Source: Trichoplax adhaerens
Lineage: Eukaryota > Animalia > Placozoa
Assembly (NCBI RefSeq): GCF_000150275.1
Contig: NW_002060953.1
Coordinates: 1,555,646 to 1,619,645 of the forward strand
DNA length: 64,000 nucleotides
Reading direction: 5' to 3'
In this document: positions 5,075 to 63,162 of the stretch, piece after piece
Layout of the letters: each line of letters starts with the position of its first letter
How positions within the stretch are numbered: the stretch's first letter is position 1
Translations under genes and position numbers: made by a program
The notes under the pieces: model-generated
Told to the model about the DNA's origin: nothing
The model's input: only the letters and a program-made list of their open reading frames with translations
The model's database searches: none

Positions 5075-7834
5075 TCATTTGCGAGGATGAACTTGATTGC
5101 TGGTCTTTCTTTGATCTTGAGGGTTGTTGTCTGGTTGAACAGAATCAGCGCTGGCATCGGCAAGTACTTCCACAGGTTTTGTCTTCAAAGAATTTTTAAA
5201 ATTATAACTAGTAATTTCCGCCATTGCTATTTGCCGATTATTTAATTCAGGGCGGTAATAGATAACATATATTTTAGGAAGAAACAAACATAGCATTGGT
5301 GAAATACCAAAAAAAAGAGTGGTTAAAGCTGTGATACTATCTGCAATTTCACCGAATAGAATCACGGTCGTTGGAATAGTACATATTTCGACAACAACGA
5401 TCAAGATGGACGATAAATAAATATATCTAGATTCATTAAAATTTTCAGGTAACAATCGTGCTCTAAATGCTAGAACCAAACAAGCTGAGCCAATCAAACA
5501 TAGCCATACAATTAAGTTTAGACTACTATATCTATTGGGAATCTGACATATAAATATCAGCTGCTTATTTGTTACTTCATGATGAATAGTAATCGGGAAG
5601 GCAAAAACTAAACATAATAAAATCGCATTAGCGATGAATAGCACCGTGAAAATAAGTAATACTTGACTGGTATTACGAGTAAAATGAATAATCTTGGTTT
5701 TTCTTCCAATAACATTCTTAAATATTAAGGATACTTGATTTGTCTTACAAAATATGGTGATAAATATACCAACTTGGCTAGTAGTAGAAGAGAACATTCT
5801 TGCTAGACAAATTGGAATAGATGGAGGCAGTATGTACAAGAAAGCTGTTGGAATGCACGCTATGATAAACAACAATAGTATATTGATTAAGATGAAATTG
5901 GATCCTTTAACTACAGGGAAATTTCTATGGCGAATCATGACTATCCAAATGCCCATTACTACAAACAAATTAGCCGAAGCTAATATAATAAATGTAATAG
6001 CTAAAGGTCTATCAAATTTCGATTGAATTAATACAGGATCAGCACATTTTGTATTATTATCATTGGGTAGGGTTACATCGGGACATAATTGGCAATGGGG
6101 ACTATTGCTCTCATTTGAGATCATATTTTGGGGACATTTTCGACATTTCCAACAGCATGGTCGTAATGATAGTGAAATATTAGGATCTTGATATAAATAA
6201 TAGCCAGGAGGGCAATCGCTGGAACATTTCGACAAAGGACTGTTAAACCATGATCGATTTCCATTCCATATAATGTTCCTTTTATTGATCATTAGACCTT
6301 GCGTTTTATTCCAGTACCCTACTTCGACAATTTTGACCTTTGCCTGTGAATTAGAAGTTGTTCTTTGTAAATTGATAACATCAAAGTAAGATTCTACCGC
6401 ACCATCAGATCGGAAGGTAATATCTGGACTTGTTACCCCGGTAAATCGTATATTTCTTAAAACTTTGTTAAATTGTTGACGATTGAAACTAGTATTATAT
6501 CCAGATGGACAGTGAGTTGTATTACAACCAAGAGCCTTATGCAATGCTTGAGCATATGCCAAAGTTGCGTCAATAACATATCCAGCGACAAAATCTGCTT
6601 TAAAAAACGAATTTAAAACTTCTTGTTTTATAACCCTATCTACTGTACAATTTTCTAAAATTGAATCGAAATCCAATCCTAAATGATTTAATTTTTCGCG
6701 ACACAGTTCTATAAACCACGGGTTTTCAAGGTTGTTGCAGAAATCAAGTTGGTTAAGATAGTTTTTAAAGCCATGTAATGCTTCATTGCTAAATGTTATG
6801 CCTATCGCTCCTCCAATAATCTCGGCTCGAATAGTGTGGATACGAGGCGAACTTAACCAATTATAGGTACCCACAAAGGTAATACCGACCACATTTTGAG
6901 CTTCTGCTTGCTTAAGCAGATCATAAATGATTGATTCTTGTCCAAATAAAACAGCAACACGTGAATTGGATTGGCTCTTCCATTTTGTAACAATGTCAAT
7001 CAGATCAGATGTCGTATAATTGTCATAAATTCTAGAAACAGTATGGTAACATATACCGTGAGTTTGGGCCAAAGTAGATATCATTTGATAGGAATTTTCT
7101 ACCTCTGCAGTACCAGCAATGACTATGGATATCCAGTTCCATTGGAAAACTTTAACGATATCAAAAATAATTTGCCTATGAATCGTGGAGGATGCCGAGG
7201 TTCGGTAGAAATAAGGAAAATGTTTACGATCGCTTAATAGGGAAGATATGGAAAAGTAACTAATTTGAGAATAGCCAAGACTACTCGTAAGCGAAGCTAA
7301 AGAAGTGGTGATAAAATCCGATCTCTCTCCTACAACTCCCACCACATGTCCTGGAGAATTCTCTTCAATACTTGTACCACTTGCAGATAATGTACGACAT
7401 AAAATTTTAGAAGAATTTAAATTACGTCCATTTTGACAGTGAGCTAAATAGGACTGCCTTTGTTTATCTTGTATTAAATGAGAGGCCAATTTTGTGATGG
7501 CTACTTCTCGTGACGAACAGGAGTCGATCAAGGTCCAGCCAAGATTGATACCTGGCAGCAATTTGGTATTATTATTGATTATATTATTAAGAGCATAGAT
7601 CATAGCTTGTGTAAGTTGTATATCTCCGGTACTTAATTGGCTGCATCGGCGAGAAGTAGCATTAAAATGCAGAGAGTTGGAAAAAATACCTATTAAGCGA
7701 AAGTCGCCAGAATTGACATGTTCTATTTGTGATTGAATTTCAGGAATATCGGCAAATAATTGCTGAAAAATTAAAAGCCATCGAAATATTGAATAAGCAC
7801 CAAAAGGCAAATAACGAAGGCTCCGAATTGACAT
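5075..7834 (-). CDS. Class C GPCR (mGluR/CaSR/V2R-like orphan), single exon, 919 aa; paralog 1
   Basis: Uninterrupted ORF with hydrophobic N-terminus; VFT motifs QAMIYA/LLPGINLGWTLIDSC, QISY, FPYFYRT, FQWNWI, NPWF, VIDA; CRD CSSDCPPG..CCWKCRKC; 7TM with PVVKGSN, CKTNQ, LPENFNESR, PKIYVIYYRPELN. Confidence 0.93.
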   Translation of the reverse strand: MSIRSLRYLPFGAYSIFRWLLIFQQLFADIPEIQSQIEHVNSGDFRLIGIFSNSLHFNATSRRCSQLSTGDIQLTQAMIYALNNIINNNTKLLPGINLGWTLIDSCSSREVAITKLASHLIQDKQRQSYLAHCQNGRNLNSSKILCRTLSASGTSIEENSPGHVVGVVGERSDFITTSLASLTSSLGYSQISYFSISSLLSDRKHFPYFYRTSASSTIHRQIIFDIVKVFQWNWISIVIAGTAEVENSYQMISTLAQTHGICYHTVSRIYDNYTTSDLIDIVTKWKSQSNSRVAVLFGQESIIYDLLKQAEAQNVVGITFVGTYNWLSSPRIHTIRAEIIGGAIGITFSNEALHGFKNYLNQLDFCNNLENPWFIELCREKLNHLGLDFDSILENCTVDRVIKQEVLNSFFKADFVAGYVIDATLAYAQALHKALGCNTTHCPSGYNTSFNRQQFNKVLRNIRFTGVTSPDITFRSDGAVESYFDVINLQRTTSNSQAKVKIVEVGYWNKTQGLMINKRNIIWNGNRSWFNSPLSKCSSDCPPGYYLYQDPNISLSLRPCCWKCRKCPQNMISNESNSPHCQLCPDVTLPNDNNTKCADPVLIQSKFDRPLAITFIILASANLFVVMGIWIVMIRHRNFPVVKGSNFILINILLLFIIACIPTAFLYILPPSIPICLARMFSSTTSQVGIFITIFCKTNQVSLIFKNVIGRKTKIIHFTRNTSQVLLIFTVLFIANAILLCLVFAFPITIHHEVTNKQLIFICQIPNRYSSLNLIVWLCLIGSACLVLAFRARLLPENFNESRYIYLSSILIVVVEICTIPTTVILFGEIADSITALTTLFFGISPMLCLFLPKIYVIYYRPELNNRQIAMAEITSYNFKNSLKTKPVEVLADASADSVQPDNNPQDQRKTSNQVHPRK

Positions 7835-10800
7835 TTTAAACTGAAATATGGAAATTAATAGCAGTTTACGGAAAAAATGTTATGATTTCTTCGATCCTCG
7901 AAGCGAATCTAATTGTTCTGTTATCGTCCAATGAAGAATAATTTATCGGATATATTACTAGACTATTTTCCTGTAAAATTCTTTTGCCTCAATCGTAACG
8001 TTAATCAAATTAATTGTAATGGTAGTTGTTTAGAAATAATTTTATACAGATAATTGCAATGGTTACAATGATAACTGTTTAAAGAAAGAATAGTGCTTAT
8101 TGTTCTATAAGTAAGAAAGATAACCTTTCTGGAAAATACCTTTTCATACTAAAGATCCGGCTGATCACAATATAGTATTCAAATCTATTTGAATGTTGAA
8201 AACAGATTATAATATTGGTTTGGACATCTTGCAATTTTATGAGCAAGTAATACAATTTTTGCTGTTACTTCTTGTTAGTTTCGTTTCGGAGATCATGTAC
8301 TGGCTTAAAAGTAATCCAATTATGCTTTAACAGATATTTTAATTTCAGCACATGGTATACGGGACGGATAATTAAGCGTTATTGACTTAACTGATATTTT
8401 CACAATAAATGATAATTGTAATTTATCATATAAAAAGAGATTTTTAAGATTTTCAGACTGAATTACCGGTAGACCTTCTACTATTGAAATTTATGCTTGC
8501 TCTGTATAGAAACTGAATTACATCTCTACAGAATTGTTTATTTCCTATTATTTGATATCGTATTGCAATGACTTGAGAAAAGAATGAAAAATCAAAATAC
8601 TAAATGTTGTCGACTGAATTACCTTAGTTAGGAAGTTCGTTTTTAACTATAGTCGGGTTAACTTAAATAGAAATATTATGTTGGTAATAACTTATACTTT
8701 TCTACTTTAATGCAACAATTAACTATGAATGCTACTGTTTGACATTATTGTAGAGCGTAAAGAAATCTTAAACAATCTTTACTAAAACATTCGCGAACAG
8801 ATTCAATACTGTTGATAGAGCAGCAAAACTGAACAAATCTGTAACAAAATGGAAGTTCATTTTACAAAGAATTTGAAAATTATCTCAAGTTATAGCTAAG
8901 TGTGTGAAGTGATTGAATTACTAATCATAGTGATTCAAGTTGACAAAAGAAATTGGAATACTAAATTGTAGCTTCAGCGGACAATCTTTCAAGCGGAAAA
9001 AAAGTTCTACTTAAATTGACAGCGTGGGAAAAAAATCTTCAACATGCAATACCAGAAAATAAGGCGTTTGTAAAGTTGGAGTCGATGTGAATTTTAACTC
9101 TTTTTTTATTTCTTTTCATTCTTACTTAATCCTTTCAAGTAATAAATGATATTATAAACAGTTACGGAGAGTGTATAAAGANNNNNNNNNNNNNNNNNNN
9201 NNNNNNNNNNNNNNNNNNNNNNNNNNNNNNNNNNNNNNNNNNNNNNNNNNNNNNNNNNNNNNNNNNNNNNNNNNNNNNNNNNNNNNNNNNNNNNNNNNNN
9301 NNNNNNNNNNNNNNNNNNNNNNNNNNNNNNNNNNNNNNNNNNNNNNNNNNNNNNNNNNNNNNNNNNNNNNNNNNNNNNNNNNNNNNNNNNNNNNNNNNNN
9401 NNNNNNNNNNNNNNNNNNNNNNNNNNNNNNNNNNNNNNNNNNNNNNNNNNNNNNNNNNNNNNNNNNNNNNNNNNNNNNNNNNNNNNNNNNNNNNNNNNNN
9501 NNNNNNNNNNNNNNNNNNNNNNNNNNNNNNNNNNNNNNNNNNNNNNNNNNNNNNNNNNNNNNNNNNNNNNNNNNNNNNNNNNNNNNNNNNNNNNNNNNNN
9601 NNNNNNNNNNNNNNNNNNNNNNNNNNNNNNNNNNNNNNNNNNNNNNNNNNNNNNNNNNNNNNNNNNNNNNNNNNNNNNNNNNNNNNNNNNNNNNNNNNNN
9701 NNNNNNNNNNNNNNNNNNNNNNNNNNNNNNNNNNNNNNNNNNNNNNNNNNNNNNNNNNNNNNNNNNNNNNNNNNNNNNNNNNNNNNNNNNNNNNNNNNNN
9801 NNNNNNNNNNNNNNNNNNNNNNNNNNNNNNNNNNNNNNNNNNNNNNNNNNNNNNNNNNNNNNNNNNNNNNNNNNNNNNNNNNNNNNNNNNNNNNNNNNNN
9901 NNNNNNNNNNNNNNNNNNNNNNNNNNNNNNNNNNNNNNNNNNNNNNNNNNNNNNNNNNNNNNNNNNNNNNNNNNNNNNNNNNNNNNNNNNNNNNNNNNNN
10001 NNNNNNNNNNNNNNNNNNTTAAAACAAATTAATTACAGATCGATAAATTCTGTATAATTAGAGTTGGATGGAGTTACACTAGAACATAAATTGTAATACT
10101 TTAAACTGGTACTGTTATAAATCTGGTAAACGGGATATTTTCGACATTTAAAACAACATAATTGCGTTGATTGTGAAATATTTTAATCGTAATATAGATA
10201 ATATGCAAGACGACAATCGATAGATCATCTCACTATCGAAATATCGTTCTGTGGTCGCTTTCCATTCCAAATAATTTTGTCGCTATTAATAACTAGACCC
10301 TGTAATTTATACCAATAACCTATTTTAGCTCTTTTAAGGTTTGCATATTTACTGTAGTTTTCTTTCTGGAAATTAGCTATAACGAGGAGTGACTTGACTG
10401 AGCCTTCAGATGAGAAAGTTATATTTACATTTATAAATGTAGAAAATTGTAAGTTACTAAGAAAATCATTAAATTATTGATAATTGGAAACATGATCTTG
10501 CTGATATATACTGTTGGTCCTATTGCAACCTAGGAACTTATGCGATACTTAAACAAATAATAAAGCAGCTTTGATAGCGTGTCCAGAGAGAAAACCGATA
10601 CTATAGAGCGATTTAAAGTTCTTTCAAATTACTATTAATTAAACAGTTCCGCATGATTATATCAGAATTAAGTCGTAACTCATTTAATAGACAATATACC
10701 ATAATGATCGCACTAGAAATAAATAACAGTAATGATTTGTTAGGCAAATGACTGTAGGATATAGTACTTGAATCATTAAATTAGAATACTGAATTAAACA

Positions 10801-12187: not shown

Positions 12188-14989
12188 CTACAGTACATCA
12201 TTTTCAATAAACTCCGGGTTAGTTATGCCTTTCACGGCTAATGAGCTTGCCCTATTTGGAGTCTGAGGAGAAAGAATCTTACGTCCAATAGCTATGGGAG
12301 AACTTTGCATATAACTGTCAGTGGAGTTATACGGTAAAGGCGATCTTGCTGCAGGCTTGCTATTTCCAAAAGAAAAGTTAGCCACACTTACTACAGCTTG
12401 TTCTTGAGTATTTAACTCAGGCTGTAGGAATATTATATAAAATTTAGGTGCGAAAAGACAAATTAAAGGAACTAAACCAAATAAAAGGGTAGTTATGGAT
12501 CCAATAATCCTATGTAGAATCCCAGTTGTAGCTATAAATGCTGGTATTCCTGTCAAGGATACACAAAGAAGCATTAACGAAGACAAAAATATGAACTTTG
12601 CCTCACTAAAATTATCCGGTAATGATCGTGTGCGATACCCCATGAATAATGTAACTGGACATAAGATACCTATACTAATAGTAGCAATTAGAAAAATTGG
12701 CTCTCCTCCAACTCGACACATAACTTCCATAGCTTGCCCCGAGTTTGCCCCGGATACTTGCAGCTTAAGCAATTCTGCTGGCTTATAATAGTATACTCCT
12801 ATCATGAGGCCATTCAGTAGGAGTAAAATGAATATAATACTGATAACTTGGTATTTATTCCTAACTACTTTGGATCGAAAGGAATTATGATTGATGGAAT
12901 TTTTAAATATCAAGGAAATCTGGTTGGCTTTACATATGACAGTTAGCAGGATGCCACAATCGGTAGTACATACTAAGCAGACAGTTGCTAAACAAACTTC
13001 TTTACGAACTGGCAAGAAAAAAGTCAAAGAAGCTGGAAGAGATACTGAAATAAAGAATAAAACAAGACTTAGAAGAATAGAATTAGATGCTTTAATAATT
13101 GGAGTATTCCTTTTAAAAATAATGATAACCCAGCAGAATAGGAGGCATATAATAAAAATAGAGGCCACGATGTAATAGACGATAACGAATCCATGATTCC
13201 AACTAAATTGAACAATATCAAAATCAATGCACTGAGTTCTGTTAGCATTTGGCTTAGTAAAACTTTGACATGTTATACATTCAAATTGATTTGTTGTATT
13301 AGATATTGTCGGTGATAAGCATGGATGGCATGTCCAACAACATAAACGATTCAGAATATTTTGGCTGCGAACTTGGTAGAATCCAGGTTGGCAATCGATA
13401 GAACACCTAGATTGAGGTACTTCGAACCATGGTCTATTTCTATTCCAGACAATTTCCTCATCGTTTATTTTTAGACCTTCTTGATCATTCCAATAACCAA
13501 TGATAATAGGCTCAATACTAGTAGTACCGTTAATTATTCTTGGTTGGAGGTTAATAACGTTATAAGACAACTTACTACTACCATCGGATCGAAAACGAAA
13601 ATGTTGACCGGTAATTCCTTTGAAGGTAATATTACTTAGGATACGATTGTATGTTTCAGAGATTCTTTCAATCGTATGAATTGGAGGACAATACGTAGCA
13701 TTGCATCCTAGATATTCATGCAATGCATGGGCAAAAGCTAATGCAGCGTCCATTACAAATGCTGAAATATAACTAATAGAATAAAATGAATCCCTATAAA
13801 TACTTTTTAATTTTAATTCTAAAGTACAGTTGGCGATAATTTCATCAACGTTATAGTTTAAAGACTTCAACGTTTCTCGCCATACTTGCATAAACCAAGG
13901 ATTAGCCAAGTTGTTACAAAAATCGAGTTGATAAATATATTTTGCAAAGTCTATTAATGTATTGGCTTTCAAATCAATTCCAATTGCGCCTGCGATTACA
14001 TCAGCATTTATCTTACGAATTCGAGGGGAATTTATCCATCCGTACGAGCCAATGAATGTTCTACCTGTTAGTTGTTGCGCTTGAGCTTGCTGAAGAAGGT
14101 GATAAATAATAGATTCATCACCTACTAAGGAGATTACATGAGAAGTAGGCCGTATCTTTAAGTCGTGAATGACCTTTACTAGTTGATTTTGAGTATAATT
14201 ATCGTAAAGAGTAGCTATATTTCCAATACATATTTTTCGGCCGGAAATTCCAATACTCTGGAGCATCGGTAGAACAATATCGATCGTTTCACTACCGGCA
14301 ACCACCACTGAGCCCCAATTCCAATTAAACTTAGTGGCAATATCCATTAAAGCATCAACTTGAGCATGATGTGGAGGAGAAGTACGGTAGAAATAGGGAT
14401 AAAATTTTCGATTCGTTAAAAGTGAACTAAAAGAAAAATAACTAATTTGAGGGAGCCGGAGGCTACTTGTAAATGATGCAGTAGATAAAGTAACAAATTC
14501 CGACTTCTCTGCTAAAATTCCAAATGTTGGCGGATGATTAGTTTTATTGGCGTTAAGGCCATCCATAATGGTAATTTGTGTTTTATTTAAGTTGTCAATA
14601 TTAATTTCACATTCCAATTCCGGAAATTCTTCTGGTTCTGACAAGAAGACATTGGCTGTAAGAGCAGTAATAGCTAATTCTCGTGATGAGCAAGAATCCA
14701 TTAATGTCCAACCAACATGAATACCAGGCAGCAGATTTGGATTATCGTTAATCAATTTGTCAATAGCGTAAATCATGGCTTGAGTCAACTGTATATTGGT
14801 CATACTAAATTGACTACATAATCTAGTAGTTAGGTTGAAACGAAGCGAATTGGGAAATATACCTTGCAGCTGAACATGACCAGATTTTCGACTAATAATT
14901 TGATTTTTGCTAAACGTTAAACCATGGCAATCGAATAAATTAATTAGAAAAACGCAGAAGAATAGGAGTAACGTGTTGATTTTCAACAT
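12188..14989 (-). CDS. Class C GPCR, single exon, ~933 aa; paralog 2
   Basis: ORF-track start at 15148 is non-ATG; first ATG at 14989 gives a signal peptide (MLKINTLLLFFCVFLINLFDCHG). Same VFT/CRD/7TM motifs (LLPGIHVGWTLMDSC, CSIDCQPG, CCWTC, TPIIKASN, LPDNFSEAK, PKFYIIFLQPELN). Confidence 0.93.
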   Translation of the reverse strand: MLKINTLLLFFCVFLINLFDCHGLTFSKNQIISRKSGHVQLQGIFPNSLRFNLTTRLCSQFSMTNIQLTQAMIYAIDKLINDNPNLLPGIHVGWTLMDSCSSRELAITALTANVFLSEPEEFPELECEINIDNLNKTQITIMDGLNANKTNHPPTFGILAEKSEFVTLSTASFTSSLRLPQISYFSFSSLLTNRKFYPYFYRTSPPHHAQVDALMDIATKFNWNWGSVVVAGSETIDIVLPMLQSIGISGRKICIGNIATLYDNYTQNQLVKVIHDLKIRPTSHVISLVGDESIIYHLLQQAQAQQLTGRTFIGSYGWINSPRIRKINADVIAGAIGIDLKANTLIDFAKYIYQLDFCNNLANPWFMQVWRETLKSLNYNVDEIIANCTLELKLKSIYRDSFYSISYISAFVMDAALAFAHALHEYLGCNATYCPPIHTIERISETYNRILSNITFKGITGQHFRFRSDGSSKLSYNVINLQPRIINGTTSIEPIIIGYWNDQEGLKINDEEIVWNRNRPWFEVPQSRCSIDCQPGFYQVRSQNILNRLCCWTCHPCLSPTISNTTNQFECITCQSFTKPNANRTQCIDFDIVQFSWNHGFVIVYYIVASIFIICLLFCWVIIIFKRNTPIIKASNSILLSLVLFFISVSLPASLTFFLPVRKEVCLATVCLVCTTDCGILLTVICKANQISLIFKNSINHNSFRSKVVRNKYQVISIIFILLLLNGLMIGVYYYKPAELLKLQVSGANSGQAMEVMCRVGGEPIFLIATISIGILCPVTLFMGYRTRSLPDNFSEAKFIFLSSLMLLCVSLTGIPAFIATTGILHRIIGSITTLLFGLVPLICLFAPKFYIIFLQPELNTQEQAVVSVANFSFGNSKPAARSPLPYNSTDSYMQSSPIAIGRKILSPQTPNRASSLAVKGITNPEFIENDVL

Positions 14990-16575
14990 ATCTAAACATG
15001 AAAAAATCGACCTGAATTTAATAGAAAAGAACAGGCAAAGGTCTAATATTCCTTTCAAAGAAGTTTTATTGTTGACATAGTTTAATCTTGCAAGACATCC
15101 AGGATAACAATCTTGGCAACGATGGGTGTAAACATTAACGATTATCAACGAAATAATCTATCGTTACAGCAATTGTAGAGCAATTGAAAAAAATTTTTTC
15201 AATCGAAGTTAAATGGCGAACTTGTAGTTTTTATTAACGGAAAACAATTTTTTTCTGCGCATGACTTACTCAAACGTTATCGTCATGTTGAAGACTAGAT
15301 AACGTCATAATGGCAAAAGAGGGACAGTAGAATAAATATATGACGTCTATATAAGAAGATAAAAGCATCATATGGCTAACAAGACTGCTATTATAAATTT
15401 CATGGCCTATAATAATCGATAGTTCATAGTAATTATCCCTCACGTCCTGTTATTCTCCTCTATTGGTGGGACTTATTCGTCTAATCTAAAAACCTTTCGA
15501 TCGCGACTCTTGAACATATAACATGAACTATAAAATAAAGATTATCGGCATAGAATTAAAAATTATTCAAAAATTTAATCTGACAACAATGTGAGAAATT
15601 CTTATAAACAATACAAGTAAAATTGTATCTTTAAATTATTAACGTGAAATTGTTATTCTGCACTGATAGAGCATAACGCAAAAATAGTAACAGTTATGAA
15701 TCATAATTATACTCAACTGCACTTTTTTTACATAGATCGATTGTGCAGCCTTATAATAAATTATATATTGAATAATAGGAATNNNNNNNNNNNNNNNNNN
15801 NNNNNNNNNNNNNNNNNNNNNNNNNNNNNNNNNNNNNNNNNNNNNNNNNNNNNNNNNNNNNNNNNNNNNNNNNNNNNNNNNNNNNNNNNNNNNNNNNNNN
15901 NNNNNNNNNNNNNNNNNNNNNNNNNNNNNNNNNNNNNNNNNNNNNNNNNNNNNNNNNNNNNNNNNNNNNNNNNNNNNNNNNNNNNNNNNNNNNNNNNNNN
16001 NNNNNNNNNNNNNNNNNNNNNNNNNNNNNNNNNNNNNNNNNNNNNNNNNNNNNNNNNNNNNNNNNNNNNNNNNNNNNNNNNNNNNNNNNNNNNNNNNNNN
16101 NNNNNNNNNNNNNNNNNNNNNNNNNNNNNNNNNNNNNNNNNNNNNNNNNNNNNNNNNNNNNNNNNNNNNNNNNNNNNNNNNNNNNNNNNNNNNNNNNNNN
16201 NNNNNNNNNNNNNNNNNNNNNNNNNNNNNNNNNNNNNNNNNNNNNNNNNNNNNNNNNNNNNNNNNNNNNNNNNNNNNNNNNNNNNNNNNNNNNNNNNNNN
16301 NNNNNNNNNNNNNNNNNNNNNNNNNNNNNNNNNNNNNNNNNNNNNNNNNNNNNNNNNNNNNNNNNNNNNNNNNNNNNNNNNNNNNNNNNNNNNNNNNNNN
16401 NNNNNNNNNNNNNNNNNNNNNNNNNNNNNNNNNNNNNNNNNNNNNNNNNNNNNNNNNNNNNNNNNNNNNNNNNNNNNNNNNATATTTTCGGGATCGATAT
16501 CTTCAGTTCGTTGTACACAAAACGACTTCAAGCTTCATAAGTAAACTTAGAAAAGTAATGTATGCGTGAACTTAC

Positions 16576-19810: not shown

Positions 19811-20431
19811 TTTTGATTCTCCCAGCTGACTTATACGGCTATAACACAGTCGTTAACAGCATTAGCGATGGATTATTCAATATATTTGTTGAATAGATAT
19901 ACGCTATTTGTCGTATCATGCAATTATCATCTTGCACATCGAGTTAATTTACTATCGCCGGGATCGACATTTCGCTACTGGTTGGCCACTAGCTCAGCCT
20001 GGAATAGACCGTCAAGGCCACCCCTGGGTACAGTACCACAGTACAGCATAATGTACTGTACACTGTACACTGTACGTTACAGTACAAGTGGCAGGATTAC
20101 AGTGCAGTATTGTAGCGCGGACTGTAATACAATGATTAGTATTAGAATGGCGAAGACATTGATGGACTTTAGTACTGTACACTGTACAGTACTATGCAAT
20201 CTTTCCAGGATAGTAGACTAGTAGTAGTTTGACTTTCAATCAGGATTGACAATTGCAAGTCCATTTCCTCCTTTTTATTTTTGACTTGAATGTTCCTATT
20301 CAGGATCGAATTAGGAAAGGGTTACTAGAGGAATAGAAGGAAAGAATGATGATCAAATTTATTTGTAAACATGGAATCATGAGAACAGTTGGTCTAGCGT
20401 AACAGTGCTGAAAAAAATTGGTTATCAGTTC

Positions 20432-20560
20432 GGGGACTAAATGTTATCTATGCTTGAATACAATTATATCTAGAATCTTTTGTTCATAAATTGATCATCA
20501 ACTAGGGGACTGAATGTTATCAGTCATTGAATACAATGATATCTAGAACCTTTCGTTAAT
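20432..20560. repeat. Diverged tandem duplication, unit ~73 bp
   Basis: GGGGACT(A/G)AATGTTATC...TTGAATACAAT(T/G)ATATCTAGAA occurs at ~20432 and ~20505. Confidence 0.75.
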
Positions 20561-21317
20561 TCATATAACCTTCAAGGTGAAATATCTCGCCTCCTGAACA
20601 TGGCAGATCAGTGCAGCTAGTAACATTAATTTCGCGAGAATAGGATCCTGTGTTCTGTGCCAAGAGTCCAAGACCATTTCATTCATACTGTCCTTCCATG
20701 TTGCTGCAATACCAAGTTTAGTCCTTTCACTTACTGTACTATACTGTATAAGTGTATAGTACAACATCCAATGTCCAATGACCATATCAGAACAAGTGAT
20801 GGGTGCTGAGCATGATATTTGCCGTTACACTTTCCTATTTCTACCCCACACTTTATTTGCACCTTGGACGTTTGGATTTTTCCTTGTACCACGGAAAAAT
20901 CGACTAGATCATGGCTCTGTAGTGATTGCAATTTCACATGACCTACGCAATCTTTGCTAACATATTGACCTTACTAATACAATTCCTGCTCTACAACTAC
21001 ATTCTCATGTTAAAATATTGTCGCCCTTTCTTGTACTATCCGTGTACGTTTCAAGATATTATGGAATCAGTATTTTGTTGACTGTCTATGGCTATGAAGC
21101 TAAAAATTTCATATTTCTTGAGTTCGTCAACGCCATTCTAGCAGTGCTTAGCGTTATATTGTATTGGGAGATCTAAAAATTACACTACTTACGGTGCAGT
21201 AGAGTGCATGCTTGAATACCATCGCTTTGTATACTTTGTTACTGAATTAAATTCTTATCGTTGATCCTGTCCTAATGTACAATTGGAGTAGCTAAAACCA
21301 AAATGATAAGGACTTGC

Positions 21318-21447
21318 AGCAATGCGCGTTGATGTACATCTTCCAAAGCGGTGCGTTACCCCCTTTGTCCACTTGCATATAGAAAGCTTAACGAATTTTT
21401 AAGGGGTAATGCACTGCTTTGGAAGATGTATATCAACGCGCATTGCT
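21318..21447 (+). repeat. Inverted repeat: 45-bp arms around a 40-nt loop
   Basis: 21318-21362 pairs with 21403-21447; the three non-Watson-Crick positions are all G:T on the + strand. Confidence 0.9.
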
Positions 21448-49434: not shown

Positions 49435-51123
49435 CTAATTTTGCGCCTTACTCATGTTTCCAAGTAGATCAATATTAGATGCTCTCTTTACCGCTATTTC
49501 AAGCTGTCTAAAGTTTTTAAAAATTGTATAATTTGTAATTTCATCGATATCATTTCGTCGAGTATTTAATTCAGGTCGATAATAAATAGCATATATTATT
49601 GGCAAGTAGCATCATACTAATGTTATAAACCCATTACTTAATGAGATAACAGCTGCTACTATATCATGAAATTTTTTAGATGTAAATGCTAGGGCCGGAG
49701 TCGTAATAATAATAGTAAAAGAATACAAAGTGCAAGCTATGAAAGTATATCTTGCATCGTTTAAGTTATAAGGTAATGAACGGCAATGATAGCAAATTGC
49801 AAGACCTAAAATGATTAGTGTAGTCCAAATGGCAACAGCAGCTATAAAAGCTGGAGAAGTACCATAGCCACAAATATGTTCAATTAATAGGTACCAGTGC
49901 TGATCATGATGATGTTTTTTGGTTAGCAAGCTATTAAGCTTAAAATTATGGAATTAATTGCTAACATCATGGCCACAACAAATATTAACACATTCAGCGC
50001 TTCAAATAGTTTTCCTAATAGCGTCTTCCTACCATAATTTTTATTCAATATTATCATAATCTGACCAATATTTCTCATTAAGATTACTGCCGTCCAAATT
50101 TGACTGTTACTAAAAAGGACTATTTGTACTGAACATAACAATGAATCTTTATGAACTAAGAGTAGTGCTGCGGATGGAAGGCATAATGTAGTATATGGTA
50201 AGAGTAGATTTAATTAAGAGGAAGTTGCTGCCCTTTATGATTGGTGTATTTCGCTTTACAATGATAAATATCCAAATAAATAATAACAGAATAATATACT
50301 ATATGTTATTGTTAGGCAATAGAATGCCATCGAAAAGATCCGTAATAACTTGGAATAAGTAATCTGATATGTCAGACATAGGGTATTATTTTCATTTAGG
50401 GCAGTCAAAATTGCTGCATGAAGTAAATTTTACTTGATTGGTGATTGTACATATGGTAGAACATATACATCGATTGCACATCCAGCAACACAGTGAAAAG
50501 CTCATTTTATGCTTACCATTAACACTAGTAAAGTAGCAAGGTGGACAGTCCTCGCTACAGTGCGCTAATGGAAATTCTCCACCATTCCAAATTATTGCTG
50601 TTGTATTGATCGCTAGCCTTTTCTTTGTACAGCATTTGCCAATACGTATTAGATCAAGACTACTTCTATTTGAATGGTAGTGCTGTTGTATTAGAATAAC
50701 ATCAAATGAAATTGATCTAATACTATCCGATCCAAAATTAATGTCAGTGTACCACTTTCCTTTAGATCGGATCTTTTGTTCATAATCATTTATTTTAGAA
50801 CGATCGTGATATAGTTTGTCTATATTAAATGATGGTCAATGCCTTAAACTACACCATAGTAAGTTATGAAGGGCTTGGGCTAAAGACAAAACGGCATCCA
50901 TAACCGAAAAGGATGTAGAATTAACTGTATGCAATGCTTGCATATCATTCTGTTTTAATTTTTGATAGGATTGCAATTCAACATGGCAGCTATAAAGCTA
51001 TAACCTGCAGACTTTAATTTCTTAGAACAAGCGCTAATAAACCAAGAATTTTCAACATATTACATAGATTTAATTTTTTCGTTTACGCGTTAAAGCTTTT
51101 AAATAATGACATGGGATATTCGA
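49435..51123 (-). pseudogene. Class C GPCR pseudogene, 3' part (late VFT, CRD, 7TM, C-tail)
   Basis: Recognisable fragments LNLC, VMDAVLSLAQALHNLL, CSEDCPP, CCWMC, TPIIKG, RSLPYNLNDARY, YYRPELNT, broken by in-frame stops and frameshifts (ORF pieces 49612-49929 and 49923-50141). Homology ends abruptly at ~51123. Confidence 0.88.
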
Positions 51124-51900: not shown

Positions 51901-53119
51901 TAATTTAGATATCACGTTATTAATATTCGCTAGATATAAAGTATAATCTACCGCCTGGACTTAGAAGATAAACATCTAATTTATAAAATTTTTTTGTTTA
52001 TATTTAATTTTGTTCGTAATTATATCTATCTTTTTCATTAATTTAAGTAAAAGTTATTTTGCTTTTATGAAGAGGAGAATGTTAGCTAGAATATTTGATC
52101 TTGATTCGTATTTAGCACAGTTATGTTAGTAATTACCGCTAGATATGATTATCTACTAATATCCGTAGCTATGCAACATCCCGGATTTAGATGTACTCCA
52201 AGAAATTGATCAAAATCAGTGGTATAGCAAAGCGTTCACTTAAGAGCTATTTTTATAATGTTTTCTAAATGCACATCCATAAAAAAAGATGCTTTGCATT
52301 ATCTAAATACAAGCTATGCAAGCATTTACAGAAAATAGACCTTAAAAATATGTGATATTAAGATTTCAGGCCGATCAATCATGCATACTTTGCTAATAAA
52401 ATGTGCAACGATTTTAAATCAGGCACAGATTTACCAATTAAAAGCACGAGTTGTAATAATTAAACGACTAATTATTTAATACTTGATTTCAACATTAATC
52501 CCTTTGAATTGCTTACCACCTGGATTTAGAGGAAAAACATCTGTTCTTTTAATTTTATAGTTGTATAGAATTTTGTTCGTAAACGATAACTAGATTTGTT
52601 CGTTAATTAAGTAATTATCTCTTACATAGAGTAAAGTGTAAACCCAAATTTTGATCTGGATTTGCAAATTAAAGAAGTTGATCTTTTTCAATTTTATCAC
52701 AAATACTAGTTCTTACTGTAATATTTTGAAGACTTCCTATCGCAATAGCTTAAATCAAAAAATCTAACATAGAACAGCGTCCTTAAATTAGAAACTAGAT
52801 CAAAAATTCTGGTTTACATTGTGCTTTCCTGTAAACTAAAACAATTTCTACTTTAATTGATAAATAAAGCTATTCATCACGACGAAAATACTCAAAAAAT
52901 ATTTTATCTTGATACAAGCACAAGTACTACGCTAAGAAAATGTATCAGTAATTTTCTATTTTTACGATTGACAATATTTAACAAATACATTAGATTACCT
53001 AAAATTGCTAAATTATAGCAAAGATAAAATCGTAGGCTTCACAACGGGCTCAATTAGGAAATAAAGCTACTTCAAAAATCTAATAGAATAAGTGTTGTTA
53101 AATCTGCAAAAATAATTAC

Positions 53120-54551
53120 ATGTAGTAAAGGACTAAAAGTAGAGTCCTTTATACCTTTCAGTATGAATCTAATATTATTTTATTATAGAAAATACCTAGA
53201 AAGCGATAGTGTCTTTAAGTTTTACCTTGACAAATCATCATGTCGCCATCTTTTCTTCTTCATTACTTTACAAGGTATTATATAGATTACTATACAAGTA
53301 GCCCTAGAGCAATTGCCTAATCTAAAGAAAGGGCGTTTGATCGTCTATTCAAATTGTAAAGGAATTTGACTTAGTAACAAAACCCTATCCTTAGAGAAAG
53401 GGGATTTATAACATGACGATAAAGTACTGTAATGTAGTCTATAATCGTATAGTTACCGTACAATCTGACGCTAAAACATCAACTGTCAACACTCAGCGAT
53501 ACTAATGTCAGAAAAGTAGTCGTAGTAGTCATATAAAATTTTTTTGATAAGCGATTACTGTGATCTTTATAAAATCCGGATTTTTCGGATTCGGATTCTG
53601 GAACCGGTCGGATTTATGTCCGATATAATTTTCCTGTTTTAATTTTTGGATTTTAATTTATGAAAAATATCGTAAGAGTTGATTTTTGAATATGAACTTT
53701 TTGTTGTGAATTTGTTACTTTGGAATTTTATGACGTGACTTGAAAGTCACATTAGCAGAGTTTAGTGAGGAAAATAGAAAATAAGATGGAAGTTGGCAGA
53801 GATTGTGTTGATTGTTAAGTAGTTAGACTGTTGTTTTTATGACTAAATCTTGATGTTTAAAGGTTGATTTTTAGACTTTTATGGTGCATTAATGAGAAAT
53901 TGTGATGGAGGGTTCGATATCTCAGAGGATTGAGATTTAGTCGCCATTTACAATTATTGCAACAAAGGGTTTATAAAAGTTATGCTTTATTGTAGGTTAG
54001 TAATGTGAAGTACAGTGAGGTAGTTACGGTAGATCAGCGTGCAAGCTGTCGTGTGTAACGAGTAGAAGTATTAGACTGTGAGAAACTAACTAGAAGACTA
54101 ACTGAGAGGCTAATGAACTCTGAGGTAGAAATCGCCGGTATTTATAGTTTTGAAGATAGAGCACATGCAGAGAATCGGATTGTGGAATTTGATACAACAT
54201 ATACCATAACAGGTTACAAAATAGCAGATGATTGTAGAAAACAGCGAGTACCGTAATAACTAAATACAGTAGTCTATATATGAATGTAGAGTAAGCGGAC
54301 TGTAGATCTGTCTAAATATAAGAGCAATACAACATGTCTATATTTAAGGGTAGAATATAGTTACAGTATATTCTAAATACACTACAGAAATTATGTTAGA
54401 AGTGAAGTTTGATGTATTTTCATAGTTAACTTGTTGGTTTTATAGTGTTTTGTTAGGGAATCATAGGGTAAATTGTGTCTCAACTTTGAGTGATTTTTGT
54501 TTTCTTAAATGGTACAAAGTAGTTTAGTAAAACGGATCTTAAGAGCGATTG
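53120..54551. repeat. Long direct repeat, copy 1 (partner 58411-59446)
   Basis: Shared blocks from TGTAGTAAA(A)GGACTAAAAGTAGAGTCC to AAACGGATCTTAAGAGCGATTG; internal CCGGA/TCCGA short repeats. Confidence 0.88.
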
Positions 54552-55129
54552 TGTAGTGTTTACTTCTAAATACGGTATAGTCTATTTTTAGTAAAAGTCA
54601 ATTTCCACTAGATTGTAGCATAACTCTAAATATGTATATGGCGTCTACTTTACAGTTATGTTATTATAGAAAATTAATTATAGAAAAGTATTATAGAAAA
54701 GTCAATACTGTATTCTTTAAAAATCTTAACAAAAGCCAGAAAAATACATTAACTTGCCACGCCCTAACTCACAGTATCAGGAATTAGGATTATTATTTTT
54801 GATATAATGTGCCATATGCTCAAATCTTTAATAATTAAATTCTTTTTACTTATACGATGATTTTACTTGAGATAATAAGAACGGGCACAGTACTTATAAA
54901 TAAGCCTTACATACTAAAAAGCACAACATTTTTAGATTATAGTATGATATCAATTAAAGTCTGAAAGATTCCCTTACTTTAATGCCGGCTTTTGCATTAC
55001 AAATGTTCTCCTTGTGTTGGCAGAATTGTCAAAAAGTAAATCTTTACCTATTAAGTATGTATGCTAAACATACATTATGATGACCGAAAAATTACATTTG
55101 CTTTATCTTATCTTTGTGTAAACATAGCC

Positions 55130-57805: not shown

Positions 57806-58410
57806 TCGAATACATAACCTTTCTATAACTTTTACCATTATTAGATTCACTAAATTGTTATAATTAGTAATTAAGTAGCGAAATATCATATTCACCATTA
57901 GTTCTTCATGTCACTAGTAACTGTACGTAAATGTTCAACGGTATTATTGTGGTTTAGCTGTATGACACTGATAACACTAATATAAGATGGAATGTACTGG
58001 AAACACCAGAGAAACATACTATATATAAGCCATAGAGATTAGAAATAAAGGCAGATTATACATATGCATTCAAATGAAGTCTAACCAAATTAAAAATAAG
58101 TTAACGTTTAATATAGCAATCTCATGGGCATTACTTGAAATATTAATTATTTTATAAATAAAGTATACGCAGATGGATACGTATACTAGTTTAGTATATA
58201 TTATTAGCTGGTTTATATCATGCTGCATCTTTAGGTGTATTAAAGCACCGAATCTTAATTGATGTCATAAAATTAATGGAATACAGTATTAAAGCACGAC
58301 GTTTTCGGTTTGAATGTGATATTTTCCTCGTATCTGCTAATAAAAAAATTTATGGTACAACCGAAAGTTTTGCACAAACTTTGCTGAAAGTTTACTCTTG
58401 TGATAGTTTA

Positions 58411-59446
58411 ATGTAGTAAAAGGACTAAAAGTAGAGTCCTTTGTAGTTCTTAGTACGTAATTAGTATTATTTTACTATAGAAAATACCTAGAAAGTGATA
58501 GTGTCTTTAAGTTTTACCCTGCCAAATCATTATGTCGCCATCTTTTCTTCTTCATTATTTTACAAGGTATTATATAGATTACTATAGAAGTAGCCCTATA
58601 GAGCAAATGCCTAATCTAAAGAAAGGGCGTTTGATCGTCTATTCAAATTGTAAAGGAATTTGACTTAGTAGCAAAACCCTATCCTTAGAGAAAGGGGATT
58701 TATAACATGACGATAAAGTACTGTAATAAAGTCTATAATCGTATAGTTACCGTACAATCTGACGCTAAAACATCAACTGTCAATACTCGCGAATACTAAG
58801 CGATACTAATGCGGTTAATGTCAGAAAAGTAGTCGTAATAGTCATATAAATTTTTTTGATAAGCGATTACAGTGATCTTTATAAAAACCAAATTTTTCCG
58901 GATTTGTGTCCGATATAGTTTTCGGATTCTGCGACCGGTTGGGTTTGTGTCCGATATAATTTTCTTGTTTTGGAACCGGTCGGGTTTATTTTTAATTTAT
59001 GTCTGAATTATAATTTTTTTGTTTTAATTTTTGGATTTTTATTCATGAAAAATATCGTAAGAGTTGATTTTTGAGATTTGGACTTTTTGTTATGAATTTG
59101 AAACTTTGGAATTTTATGACGTGACTTGAAGTCACATTAGGAGATATAGTGAGGAAAGTAGAAAATAAGATGGAAATTGGCAGAGGTTGTGTTGATTGTT
59201 AGGTAGTTAGAATGTTGTTTTTATGACTAAATCTTGATGTTTAAAGGTTGATTTTTAGACTTTTATAGTGTATTAATGATAGAAATTATGTTAGAAATGA
59301 AGTTTGATGTATTTTTATAGTTAGCTTGTTAGGTTTATAGCGTTTTGTAAGGGAATCGTAGGGTAAATTGTGTCTGAACTTTGAATAATTGTTGTTTTCT
59401 TAAATGGTGCAAAGTAGTTTTGTAAAACGGATCTTAAGAGCGATTG
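58411..59446. repeat. Long direct repeat, copy 2, lacking ~490 bp present in copy 1
   Basis: Aligns by eye to 53120-53895 and 54386-54551; the deletion joins two AGAAATT microhomologies. Confidence 0.88.
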
Positions 59447-60559
59447 GTTAGCAAATGTTTAGTTTTAAATACCTCTGACGGCTCTACGAAGCCTATAAAT
59501 GATAGTACAATTAGAAAGTTTAGAGAGAGAGTAGAAGAAGGTTTTATTTGAAGAACTTGTTGAATTTAAAAGCCTTCGGGGTCGAATTGTCGTAAGTTAA
59601 AACGTTCTTCTTTTTTTGAAAGGTTGTTTGGTCGTTGACAGTTTTTAAGTCTGTCATTTATTTTATTAATACTTAAAGCTAAGTATTTGTAAGGTTGTTC
59701 GGTTTATACTTCTCTCCATTTTTGTTTTGTAATAAATTGTTGTTCGGTTATTTCCCCAAATTTTATTTGGTGTCAAAGCATTAGCGTTAAGTCGACCGGA
59801 GTGCAACGAAAGTAGAATCAAAGTTTGTTAAAGTTTTGTAGCTTGATCTCTACACTAGTCATTTCATTACATTAATCAATGTTCATTCTGAAACTTGCAT
59901 TTAAATCTTATAGTCTATAGTAAAGAGGCCTGAAAATTTTTTTGTGCCAATAAATATCATAGTGTAGCCTAATGGTGATCGATAAAAAAAAAATTTCTTG
60001 TCTCAAAAGATGAATAAAATTTAATTACTTAGCCAACCTTGTGATTTTATTGTAGTAAAATACGCTATGAAATACTAACACAAGTGGTGATGTTAGATTA
60101 GCCAGGTTTTGACAATGTAAAGCAATCATATTTCATATTCGTTATTAACTTCGATTCAAAGCATAAACTTTTCAATAAATGAATAACCCTACTTTATCGT
60201 TTTAAATTGATATTTAAGATAAGTTAGATAACTACGTAACTAATTCATTTCTGAACTAGAAATTTCAGTAAATAGCAGTATAGTAATGGTGAATTAGCTC
60301 TCGATGCAATTAAAGTTAGGTATTAGCTGATGAAAGCGTAATAATTCCATATTTAAATAAAGTTAGAGGATTTTCATAAGAAGAATTCATAATTGAAGAT
60401 TATCTCAGTTCAAAATGGTAATCATCAATTTCATTGCCAGTAAAATAGTATCGCTACCCTTATTTCAGTATGTGGTTTAATTTACAGAAAAAGTAGACCT
60501 GGACACCAAGGTTACTCTTATTGTAATCTAAACTTTAATTTAACTCCAATCTTATCACT

Positions 60560-61284
60560 CCAACTTATTGTCCTTAATAGATATTGTAATCAAATTCCAA
60601 TTGAATTGGATATCAGTTATCGCTACTGGAAATTCAATTTCCAGCTATGTCCTGTCAGAACTCCCTCTGTTAGTCAAGAAATATAAAATATGCTTAATAC
60701 TTAATGCGACTATTCATGATAATTACATTCGATCAGATCTTACAGAAATAGTATTAAAGTTAAGGAACCGCAAACGCTCGGACGTCGCTATTCTCATAGG
60801 AAAAGAACCCAATAGATATTCATTTCTTAAGGAAGTCGAGTATTGAAACTTTGCGGGTGAAACTTAATTGGTTCTATTGAACGGTTAAAGTCACCTCGAA
60901 TCAGAAATAATATCAACGGAGCAATTATTAGCTGAGCAATAGGCGTCGAATATCCCATGTCATTATTTAAAAGCTTTAATGCGTAAACGAAAAAATTAAA
61001 TCTATGTAATAATGTTGAAAATTCTTGGTTTATTAGCGCTTGTTCTAAGAAATTAAAGTCTGCAGGTTATAGTTTTATAGCTGCCATGTTGAATTGCAAT
61101 CCTATCAATAATTAAAACAGAATGACATGCTAGCATTGTATACAGTTAATTCTACATCCTTTTCGGTTATGGATGCCGTTTTGTCTTTAGCCTAAGCCCT
61201 TCATAACTTACTATGGTGTAGTTTAAGGCGTTGACCATCATTTAATATAGACAAATTATATCACGATCGTTCTAAAATAAATGA
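60560..61284 (+). pseudogene. Class C GPCR pseudogene, mid-VFT part, truncated by an assembly gap
   Basis: ORF 60568-60846 (DIVIKFQLNWISVIATG..IHDNYIRSDLTEIV) matches the paralog VFT; stops follow, then LNLCNNVENSWF and VMDAVLSLA. 60946-61284 is an inverted copy of 50786-51123. Confidence 0.85.
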
Positions 61285-61334
61285 NNNNNNNNNNNNNNNN
61301 NNNNNNNNNNNNNNNNNNNNNNNNNNNNNNNNNN

Positions 61335-63162
61335 GTCATTTTATAACGCAAAGAGATGAAATGATGTAAAATAAAATTGCAAAAGCTCCTCTCCAATTGA
61401 AACGTAAAACTTTATAACTGATACATTGTGTTCCATTTGAATTACTGTAAAAGAAATTTCGACACCTAGAGCAATTAAGCTGATTATAAGTTGTACTGAT
61501 ACTATACTTAGAGCACTTTCGGCAATTCCAACAACATGTCCACAGTTTCAGAGGTAAGCTGGAATCATGATTTACGCGATAACCTGGTTTACAATCCCTA
61601 CTACAACGTGATGTTGGAGTTTTATTGCTATTCCAAACTATTTTTGTGGAATTAATCGTTAACCCATTTTCCTTACTCCAGTTACCGACTACAATCGGAC
61701 TTAACGACTGCAAGTTATTAATGTATACATTTTGATAATTAACAAAGTTAAATCCAGTTCCACTAGAACCGTCACTGTTAAAATGTATTAAGTCGCTACT
61801 AACTCCTTGAAATTGAATATTTCTTAAACAATGATTTAACTGTTCTCGGTCACGATTAATTTCCATTGCATTAAGAGCGGGACAAGATGTATTAGTACAG
61901 CCTAATTTATGATGTAAAGAATACGCCAAGGCTAAAACTGCGTCCATGATAAAAGCTGTAAATGATTGCGGTACGTAAAAAGTTCTTTTGAGAATCCTTG
62001 CCATTTGAGGACCGTATTTACAGTTAGCTGTAGCCGATTTTGAAATTTCTTTCCGTGCATCAAATAACCACGGATTTCCATGACTATCGCATAAATTAAG
62101 TTTACGTAAGTAATCGTCAAAGTGGCGTATTATTTTTTTATTGACGTCGATACTAATAGCGCCACGGATAATATCGCTGCTAATATTTGCTATTTGTGCT
62201 TCGGTTAACCAATTATAAGTACCGATCCATGTTATTCCAGTAAGCCTTTGCGATTGAGCTTGCTTAAGTAACGCATAGATGATCTTATTATTACCTGTTA
62301 AAATAACGACTTTAGATTTAATCGTTTTCTTCAGATTTTGTATAGCGCTAATCATATCAGATTGGGTATAATTATTAGATATTACAATATTATTAGCGAC
62401 ACATATTTTCTTAAATGAGAATTGGCGTAATAATGTAGTGCTGAATTCTTTATCAATAGTAGAGCCTGTAACTATTACTGAAACCCAATTCCAGTTAAAG
62501 TTACTAATAATATCAGCAATAGCTTCAGCTTGCTGTTTATATGATATAGACGTGCGATAGAAATAAGGACACATAACACCAGAGCTTAATGCAGTAGTAC
62601 GTGAATTATAGGTAATTTGGATGACGCGAAAGGAACTTGTATAATAGGCCAAAGGAATAGTAAGATGGTCAGAATCTTCACCAATAACGCCGATAATTGG
62701 CGGTTCCGAACTAACTGTATTATTTAAGTTATACTGCAGAGTTCGGACAAAAGGATCAAGATTGGCATAATTTAAATTTCGGCTTGATAGCAGTTGAAAA
62801 ATGTTAGACTTTCTGAAATGATATTCTAATGAAGCCATAGCAAGTTCTCGCGATTTACAGGAATCAATCAATGTCCAACCAACTTTAAGTCCAGGTAGTA
62901 ATTTTGGATTTCTATTAACTAGTTCGTCGATCGCATAGATCATAGCTTGCATTAGTTGTACATTTTTTAGTTCACACTGGCTGCAAAGCTTGGTTGTCTC
63001 GTTAAATTGTAAAGAATTTGGGAAAATACCAATTATTTGAACATTTCCAAATTTTTGGCTGTAAACTGGAGCTCTTTCATTTTTCAATGTCACGTTGCTG
63101 ACTAGGCTTAACAGAAAGACGCTGTGGAAAAATATATCTTTTAATTTCAATAATATAGCCAT
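61335..63162 (-). CDS. Class C GPCR, 5' two-thirds (VFT, CRD, start of TM1), cut by gap; near-identical to paralog 6 (possible allelic haplotig)
   Basis: Matches 43923-45750 with about two coding differences seen, and the upstream non-coding DNA also matches. The apparent stop at 61336 arises from a 1-nt deletion at the contig edge. Confidence 0.8.

Follow-up and report, generated by a model that had tools for sequence, protein, structure and literature searches.

The closest described systems to the genes considered here are the metabotropic glutamate receptor (mGluR)-like receptors of the placozoan Trichoplax adhaerens and the clustered class C chemoreceptors of vertebrates. Nikitin et al. 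(2023) counted 34 mGluR-like and 37 GABA-B-like receptors in Trichoplax, the result of 'massive lineage-specific expansions', found three of the four mGluR-like clades nearer to CaSR, taste and vomeronasal receptors, and proposed nutrient sensing; the mGluR-like genes are treated there as amino-acid receptors, under the label 'metabotropic glutamate-like amino acid receptors' (PMC10133484). Amino-acid-binding class C receptors carry a five-residue signature in the proximal pocket (S150, S/T173, D193, Y221 and D/E307, in OlfCa1 numbering), which was required in every amino-acid-binding class C receptor known at that time; most mouse V2Rs are without it, and its absence goes with other ligands (PMC1764893). 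Here we describe a 64,000-nt stretch of T. adhaerens DNA (contig NW_002060953.1, positions 1,555,646 to 1,619,645; hereafter the window, whose own coordinates are used unless stated otherwise), which forms the centre of a ~117-kb tandem block of class C G-protein-coupled receptor (GPCR) genes at scaffold positions 1529358-1646113 of a 2,399,976-bp contig. The block holds 13 intact single-exon genes, one gap-cut copy and several pseudogenes. Its 13 intact genes form a clade in which the amino-acid signature appears to be lost wholesale, and their products are likely to detect chemicals other than amino acids. Placozoans coordinate feeding without neurons, and which receptors read their environment is an open question; the literature lumps about 34 mGluR/CaSR-like receptors as amino-acid sensors.

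The published Trichoplax mGluR-like repertoire comprises the same genes as ours (34 there and 35 full-length genes in single open reading frames (ORFs) here), and the lineage-specific class C expansion was already published in 2023 (PMC10133484). The text of that paper is silent on introns and gene structure, tandem order, pseudogenes and pocket residues, and the 13-member clade without the signature comes from the present analysis. We add the apparent signature loss, the genome-wide single-exon state together with the transcript of one gene (R3), the age of the paralogs, a conversion between two of them (R5 and R6) and the gap-cut status of R8. Signature loss, the 35 single ORFs and R5/R6 conversion were found neither in PMC10133484 nor in the literature searched, and the same literature yielded no paper on placozoan class C genes being intronless or in tandem.

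Vertebrate V2R/OlfC arrays resemble the block in class C architecture and in forming tandem clusters with pseudogenes and young duplicates. The block genes are single-exon, whereas V2R/OlfC genes are multi-exon; the block lies outside the CaSR/OlfC/V2R clade and is of independent origin; and Trichoplax, unlike the vertebrates that carry V2R/OlfC genes, has neither neurons nor a sensory organ. In both systems, some members bear the signature (OlfC; other Trichoplax paralogs) and others do not (most V2Rs; the block) (PMC1764893). Among solved structures, the best matches of the subfamily profile over the flytrap, cysteine-rich and 7TM domains are to CaSR (395 bits, in two stretches) and mGluR7 (390 bits, in one), with T1R2 lower at 274 bits, and sequence matches to solved CaSR and mGluR structures have E values of 1e-117. 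CaSR and mGluR7 share the RxTPxVK, NE(S/A)(R/K) and xPKxY motifs with the block, which is orthologous to neither. The Trichoplax GABA-B-like receptors, counted separately in the literature (37 genes; PMC10133484), belong like the block to the Pfam 7tm_3 superfamily and are tandemly clustered in the genome. Their loci contain 7tm_3 only in exon-sized pieces and are therefore multi-exon, whereas in the window genes the ORF is continuous and a cysteine-rich domain is present.

The amino-acid pocket of the block genes

The pocket was compared in a sequence alignment of the block, ten reference receptors and all other Trichoplax paralogs. At the five signature positions, the 13 block genes read as follows.

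S150: Asp or Glu in 11 of 13, Tyr in 1, Asn in 1; Ser kept in 0 of 13
S/T173: Phe in 9 of 13, Arg in 2, Ile in 1, Ser in 1
D193: Asp kept in 1 of 13
Y221-G222: absent from 13 of 13
D/E307: Tyr in 13 of 13, as in the five outside relatives; the acidic residue here normally holds the alpha-amino group of the ligand

By contrast with the block, the complete signature is found in all ten references and in at least 12 other Trichoplax paralogs, one of them at C1414:8146299. No block gene carries the five-residue signature of the amino-acid-sensing class, and in CaSR terms, S147, S170, D190, Y218 and E297 become Asp/Glu, mostly Phe, a variable residue, an absent residue and Tyr. As aligned, the amino-acid signature is thus lost wholesale in this clade. 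Of the wider motif, the structural Arg and Gln (FxRT...Q stretch) are for the most part retained, and the proteins have the look of functional class C receptors in which the cleft was remodelled and not abolished. The split between about a dozen signature-keeping paralogs and a 13-gene block with a conserved Tyr and an acidic residue provides a testable partition for deorphanisation.

Architecture and content of the array

With 136 kb of flanking sequence included, the 13 intact block genes divide into seven within the window, four to its left and two to its right. Identity to R3 is 36-42% throughout, and the block is oriented mainly on the - strand. The window carries the following receptor genes.

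5075-7834, - strand: R1, intact, 919 aa; ANF_receptor 5e-48, NCD3G 1e-11, 7tm_3 1e-39; public model TRIADDRAFT_59558
12188-14989, - strand: R2, intact, 933 aa from the first ATG; the open frame extends to 15148
22089-24803, - strand: R3 coding sequence (CDS), intact, 904 aa; transcript 21614-24870
28669-31347, - strand: R4, intact, 892 aa
35792-38527, - strand: R5, intact, 911 aa
43015-45750, - strand: R6, intact, 911 aa
55061-57805, + strand: R7, intact, 914 aa; sole intact + strand copy
61336-63162, - strand: R8t, codons 1-608 of a copy 99.6% identical to R6; only the flytrap and cysteine-rich domains are present

The seven intact ORFs (892-933 aa from the first ATG) each encode a Venus-flytrap, a cysteine-rich and a seven-transmembrane (7TM) domain. 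Pfam detects the flytrap (ANF_receptor) in R1-R7 and R8t at E values of 3e-36 to 4e-50, the nine-cysteine domain (NCD3G) in all copies at 4e-9 to 1e-11 (in R7 at 36.6 bits, slightly below the curated 38.9) and a full-length 7tm_3 in R1-R7 (profile positions 2-251 of 251; 1e-36 to 1e-50). A CCWxC motif is present in 13 of 13 block members and the xPKxY motif of the seventh transmembrane helix in 12 of 13. Pairwise identity among the window paralogs is 34-41%, with the exception of R5, R6 and R8t, at 96-99.7%.

An initial annotation, made from the window's sequence alone, had read this stretch as seven intact single-exon class C receptors, one truncated copy and two pseudogene fragments within ~58 kb, and much of that description holds. 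The seven receptors are borne out by their ORFs and by the Pfam matches to all three domains, the predominance of the - strand by six of the seven intact genes and R8t, and the proposed range from strong divergence to near-identity by the values above; the family motifs that it listed (GIFPNSLxFN, QAMIYA, GWTLIDSCxSRExA and TPVxKGSN) are present in most copies. Its supposition of a non-vertebrate, nerveless animal was correct, the same-contig genes TRIADDRAFT_11427 and TRIADDRAFT_59558 identifying T. adhaerens. Three points needed revision: the array is not confined to ~58 kb but continues on both sides of the window; tblastn finds five decayed fragments instead of two; and the truncated copy, R8t, is cut by a 50-N gap, its stop codon arising from a 1-nt deletion near a contig end.

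The four public gene models that were checked are shorter than the ORFs (R1, 865 versus 919 aa; R3, 746 versus 904; R6, 841 versus 911; R7, 820 versus 914) and appear to have lost N-terminal parts or to include false introns; the corrected single-exon ORFs would help expression atlases and cloning. Receptor genes and N-run artefacts aside, the window contains a single ORF of 110 aa or more, at 19868-20221 on the + strand (117 aa), with no Pfam match. ORFs listed across gaps were rejected as runs of N. In the 300 nt upstream of 12 non-redundant genes, no 7-mer exceeded shuffled controls as a shared promoter motif, and the candidate ATCGAT was discarded as not enriched (23 found, 19.9 expected).

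Phylogeny and age of the paralogs

A profile built from R1-R7 and compared with 1.84 billion representative proteins retrieved 9927 relatives. Scores exceeded about 740 bits for the array family and ranged from 540 to 660 bits for other Trichoplax clades, and the single-gene matches that remained stayed below about 465 bits; fused multi-gene models (for example, two from Polypterus) score higher than 465 bits. Trees built with FastTree (135 rows) and with IQ-TREE under LG+C20 with posterior mean site frequencies (PMSF; 65 rows) gave the same picture. The 13 block genes and five Logan/ENA proteins (P0002, P0004, P0006, P0022 and P0024) form one clade, with a Shimodaira-Hasegawa (SH)-like support of 100 in FastTree and an SH-aLRT of 100 on a stem of length 0.94 in IQ-TREE. 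This clade is nested in a 37-row clade (support 99) that contains only Trichoplax genes, the five Logan/ENA proteins and one near-copy, and that represents a placozoan-only radiation of about 33 genes. Outside it fall Anguilla mGluR4-like, Clupea mGluR1, Saccoglossus mGluR8-like and Saccoglossus CaSR-like sequences, zebrafish OlfCj1 and a frog V2R. The window genes belong neither to the mGluR clade, inside which two other Trichoplax genes fall (C1410:3654531 and 3663708), nor to the CaSR/OlfC/V2R clade.

Within the block clade, single paralogs pair with the outside relatives: R3 with P0004 (55-58% identity), R2 with P0002 (61-63%), R7 with P0022 and P0006, and a right-hand block neighbour with P0024. 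These outside pairs (55-61%) are closer than the old paralogs of the array are to each other (34-41%). P0004 is not encoded in this assembly, in which its best match is R3 at 56%. Because single paralogs pair with outside relatives, most duplications would predate the split from the source organism of those relatives, presumably another placozoan genus; on these trees, the block clade is not species-specific and most of its duplications are old. The independent expansion of class C receptors proposed in the initial annotation is therefore upheld by the placozoan-only clade, as by the published expansion (PMC10133484), and of the single species-specific clade that it envisaged, the single clade apart from mGluR and CaSR/OlfC/V2R stands, whereas the restriction to one species falls with the outside partners of R2, R3, R7 and the neighbour.

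A + strand block of a different class C clade adjoins the array at scaffold positions 1649538-1681047 (G000:C1404; window coordinates 93893-125402). It comprises three intact genes and a fourth that is broken into two ORFs (475 and 619 aa), all only 24-30% identical to R3, and the intact gene at 1678234-1681047 keeps the full amino-acid signature.

Single-exon genes and the R3 transcript

Across the genome searched (105.6 Mb in 1414 contigs), 7tm_3 has 139 matches, of which 35 are complete domains in open frames of 721-994 aa and the rest are exon-sized pieces. All 35 full-length class C genes with flytrap, cysteine-rich and 7TM domains are single ORFs, among them two mGluR-clade genes and two placed nearer to CaSR-type sequences. 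Among the complete genes that were fetched, six have all three domains in full in a single ORF and a seventh is without the first part of the flytrap; examples of such single-ORF genes lie at L015:2909-5578, L016:1732-4389, L018:1694-4660 and L029:1733-4405. The intronless state is thus a property of all genes of this architecture in the genome and not specific to the array. About 100 further 7tm_3 matches, only exon-sized and located in other clusters, presumably belong to GABA-B-like genes.

Transcription was checked over 20500-26400 (R3 and its flanks) in four runs from four studies (X14, X15, X17 and X19). X14 yielded one colinear contig of 3257 nt over 21614-24870, with no intron, so that the R3 transcript consists of a 67-nt 5' untranslated region (UTR), the CDS and a 3' UTR of about 475 nt. 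The contigs of X15, X17 and X19 share the 3' end of the X14 contig within 60 nt and its 5' end within about 20 nt; the last X17 contig stops at 24716. Nothing from the four runs lay on the flanks at 20500-21241 and 24871-26400, and no joints were seen in them. DNA runs, by contrast, held about 88% of the sequence words of the stretch. Given gene-limited, unspliced contigs on the one hand and the broad cover by DNA runs on the other, R3 is transcribed, as an unspliced mRNA of about 3.3 kb. The intronless character emphasized at the outset is accordingly real, in uninterrupted ORFs and in the 3.26-kb R3 contig, but not distinctive.

Proposed function and its alternatives

We regard it as likely that the 13-gene, signature-less placozoan block encodes detectors of chemicals other than amino acids. 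The receptors would act as dimers in which the flytrap closes around an extracellular ligand, and closure would be signalled through the cysteine-rich domain to the 7TM domain and from there to a G protein. The ligand would not be a free alpha-amino acid bound in the canonical manner; the most likely role would be the detection of another extracellular chemical, whether supplied by food or biofilm or secreted by the animal itself. We infer a chemosensory role for the array as a whole. Several points weigh against the reading as non-amino-acid detectors. The pocket was mapped by sequence alignment and not from a structure. Mean paralog identity is 40% in the flytrap and 35% in the 7TM domain, so that the flytrap shows no excess of variation such as a repertoire diversifying at the binding site would have. 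Expression was examined for R3, and RNA is on record for X19 only, X14, X15 and X17 being RNA by guess; the gene-limited cover in these three runs argues for transcripts. Finally, the ratio of nonsynonymous to synonymous substitution rates (dN/dS) between R5 and R6 is 0.8, from few changes that lie mostly in the signal peptide and C-terminal tail.

One alternative is that these are ordinary nutrient receptors, with glutamate, glycine or another free amino acid as the ligand in the flytrap cleft. The block does belong to the mGluR/CaSR-type superfamily, and Trichoplax responds behaviourally to amino acids and has been credited with 34 such receptors (PMC10133484). The core residues of the signature are nevertheless missing from the 13 block members and kept in at least 12 other Trichoplax paralogs, and the motif was required in the amino-acid-binding class C receptors then known, its absence from V2Rs going with other ligands (PMC1764893); we therefore think amino-acid binding of this kind improbable. 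The flytrap might also bind no ligand at all, the proteins being silent dimer partners in the manner of GABA-B2 and T1R3, or a family drifting towards loss. The canonical pocket is gone from the block, the array contains several pseudogenes, the R5/R6 dN/dS is about 0.8 and ANF_receptor scores are lower in the block (126-171 bits) than in signature-bearing paralogs (190-255 bits). Against this stand thirteen ORFs of ~900 aa that are still open at 34-41% identity, the conservation of the replacement residues (Tyr in 13 of 13 and in all five outside relatives, an acidic residue in 11 of 13) and the transcription of R3, and we hold a ligand-free flytrap to be very unlikely.

Two further possibilities concern where a non-amino-acid ligand would come from. 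The rebuilt pocket, with its invariant Tyr and acidic residue, may recognize a non-amino-acid class of ligands, as V2Rs do in comparison with OlfCs, and may let digestive (lipophil) cells or others at the surface of this neuron-free animal sense food or biofilm, a proposal that we make tentatively. The receptors may instead be tuned to the animal's own secreted signals (peptides or small transmitters) and mediate paracrine coordination, not environment sensing, which we consider possible with some reservation. Signature-less mammalian V2Rs bind peptides and proteins, and placozoan-like assemblies have individual paralogs in common, as would be the case if each receptor were paired with a fixed ligand. 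The GPCRs of placozoans are for the most part specific to these animals, and each cell type expresses its own combination of them (Najle et al. 2023; PMC10580291). However, duplication and pseudogene formation are still under way in the array, which is more typical of families of environmental chemoreceptors, and nothing in the analysis separates the own-signal reading from the environment-sensing one. Supplementary file 3 of PMC10580291 annotates several Trichoplax class C genes as 'calcium_sensing_receptor' in the lipophil (digestive gland cell) module, which includes the class C genes TriadG59563 and TriadG59571 and also holds relaxin-receptor-like and adhesion GPCRs. The two gene numbers lie near that of the R1 model (59558), which makes them candidate window genes and the link to lipophil cells no more than a lead.

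Decayed fragments and assembly gaps

Five decayed receptor pieces were found in the window by tblastn, all with stops in every frame.

2610-3286, - strand: F0, weak remnants similar to R1 residues 464-503 and 663-719; tblastn E 4e-5 to 7e-6
10021-10687, - strand: F1, pseudogene fragment, about residues 370-648, several in-frame stops; abuts the gap at 9182-10018
27318-27836, - strand: F2, decayed remnant of the 7TM C terminus; tblastn against R7 residues 716-894, 30% identity, E 4e-9
49465-51123, - strand: F3, frameshifted pseudogene, about residues 369-884
60550-61284, + strand: F4, frameshifted fragment, about residues 207-461; ends at a gap

No N-terminal part of F1 was detectable upstream, and the left side of the gap at 9182-10018 has no receptor similarity; with several in-frame stops, F1 is a pseudogene whatever the gap holds. 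The gaps at 15783-16481 and 41351-42008 lie in intergenic DNA, both sides of each being without receptor similarity. The gap at 61285-61334 (50 N) separates F4 (+ strand, about residue 461) from R8t (- strand, codon 609); because the two differ in strand and residue position, its sides are neither continuous nor in frame. After the window end come N runs at window coordinates 64001-66029 (2.0 kb) and 67457-81218 (13.8 kb); they may be gaps in the assembly or withheld stretches, and more members of the array could lie within them. Two small unplaced contigs (G000:C1064:4909-6180 and G000:C836:1925-2761) each have the open N-terminal part (471 and 360 aa, respectively) of another subfamily member, with 40% identity to P0004.

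Gene conversion, possible recent duplication and probable inversion

The tandem array combines old paralogs, very young copies and pseudogenes, the make-up of a chemoreceptor-type birth-and-death family and a coexistence already noted in the first reading of the sequence. Physical neighbours tend to be sister genes in the trees (for example, R1 and its left neighbour, and R4 and R5/R6), which fits growth of the block by local duplication. The closest pair of intact genes shares one extended tract.

36048-38447 (R5) and 43271-45670 (R6), strand not assigned: gene-conversion tract, 2393 of 2400 bases matching

Outside the tract, identity drops to about 65-70% in the 5' flanks and to 85% in the C-terminal tail, and no alignment of the 3' flanks is possible; 33 of the 38 amino-acid differences between R5 and R6 fall in residues 2-15 or 814-911. 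A near-identical core between diverged flanks and ends is the pattern of gene conversion, here between older duplicates. Two families of interspersed repeats lie at 42228-42846 in the 3' flank of R6, and dozens of copies of them, 70-82% identical, are spread over the genome, which is probably why the 3' flanks do not align.

R8t resembles R6 not only in its codons but also over about 840 nt upstream, as far as the end of the window. As R8t owes its stop codon to the loss of one nucleotide in an A/T run, 10 nt before the contig ends, a biological truncation of R8 is not shown, and the truncation is a matter of the assembly (gap 61285-61334); no third copy of the 3' part of R6 was found anywhere in the assembly. 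A second, equal-scoring copy of F3 lies 17,411 nt further on, past the window end, on a 1.4-kb contig between N runs, and R8t, on a contig of 2.7 kb, is offset from its counterpart by the same distance of about 17.41 kb. R8 and the second F3 copy are thus either a very recent duplication of ~8 kb or misplaced haplotigs. That such near-identical copies are in part products of a 2008 draft assembly, R8t and the second F3 copy being allelic haplotigs set into scaffold gaps, is quite possible: both sit on small contigs bounded by N runs, the 99.6% identity of R8t to R6 and of the F3 copies includes the flanks, the offset is common to the two, and other small contigs in the assembly duplicate scaffold sequence. 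A collapsed recent tandem duplication would, however, fragment likewise, and R5 and R6, with distinct flanks inside long contigs, are certainly two loci.

R7, the only intact + strand gene, is bracketed by a 339-nt inverted repeat (50786-51123 versus 61284-60946, 97% identical) that links F3 to F4, the last 339 nt of F4 being an inverted copy of the 5' end of F3. An inversion of ~10 kb with a duplicated breakpoint is the probable event that flipped R7, a reading limited by the fact that one arm of the repeat ends at a gap. Direct repeats also lie on either side of R7, at 53112-53904 and 58403-59290 (83%) and at 54386-54573 and 59281-59472 (89%).

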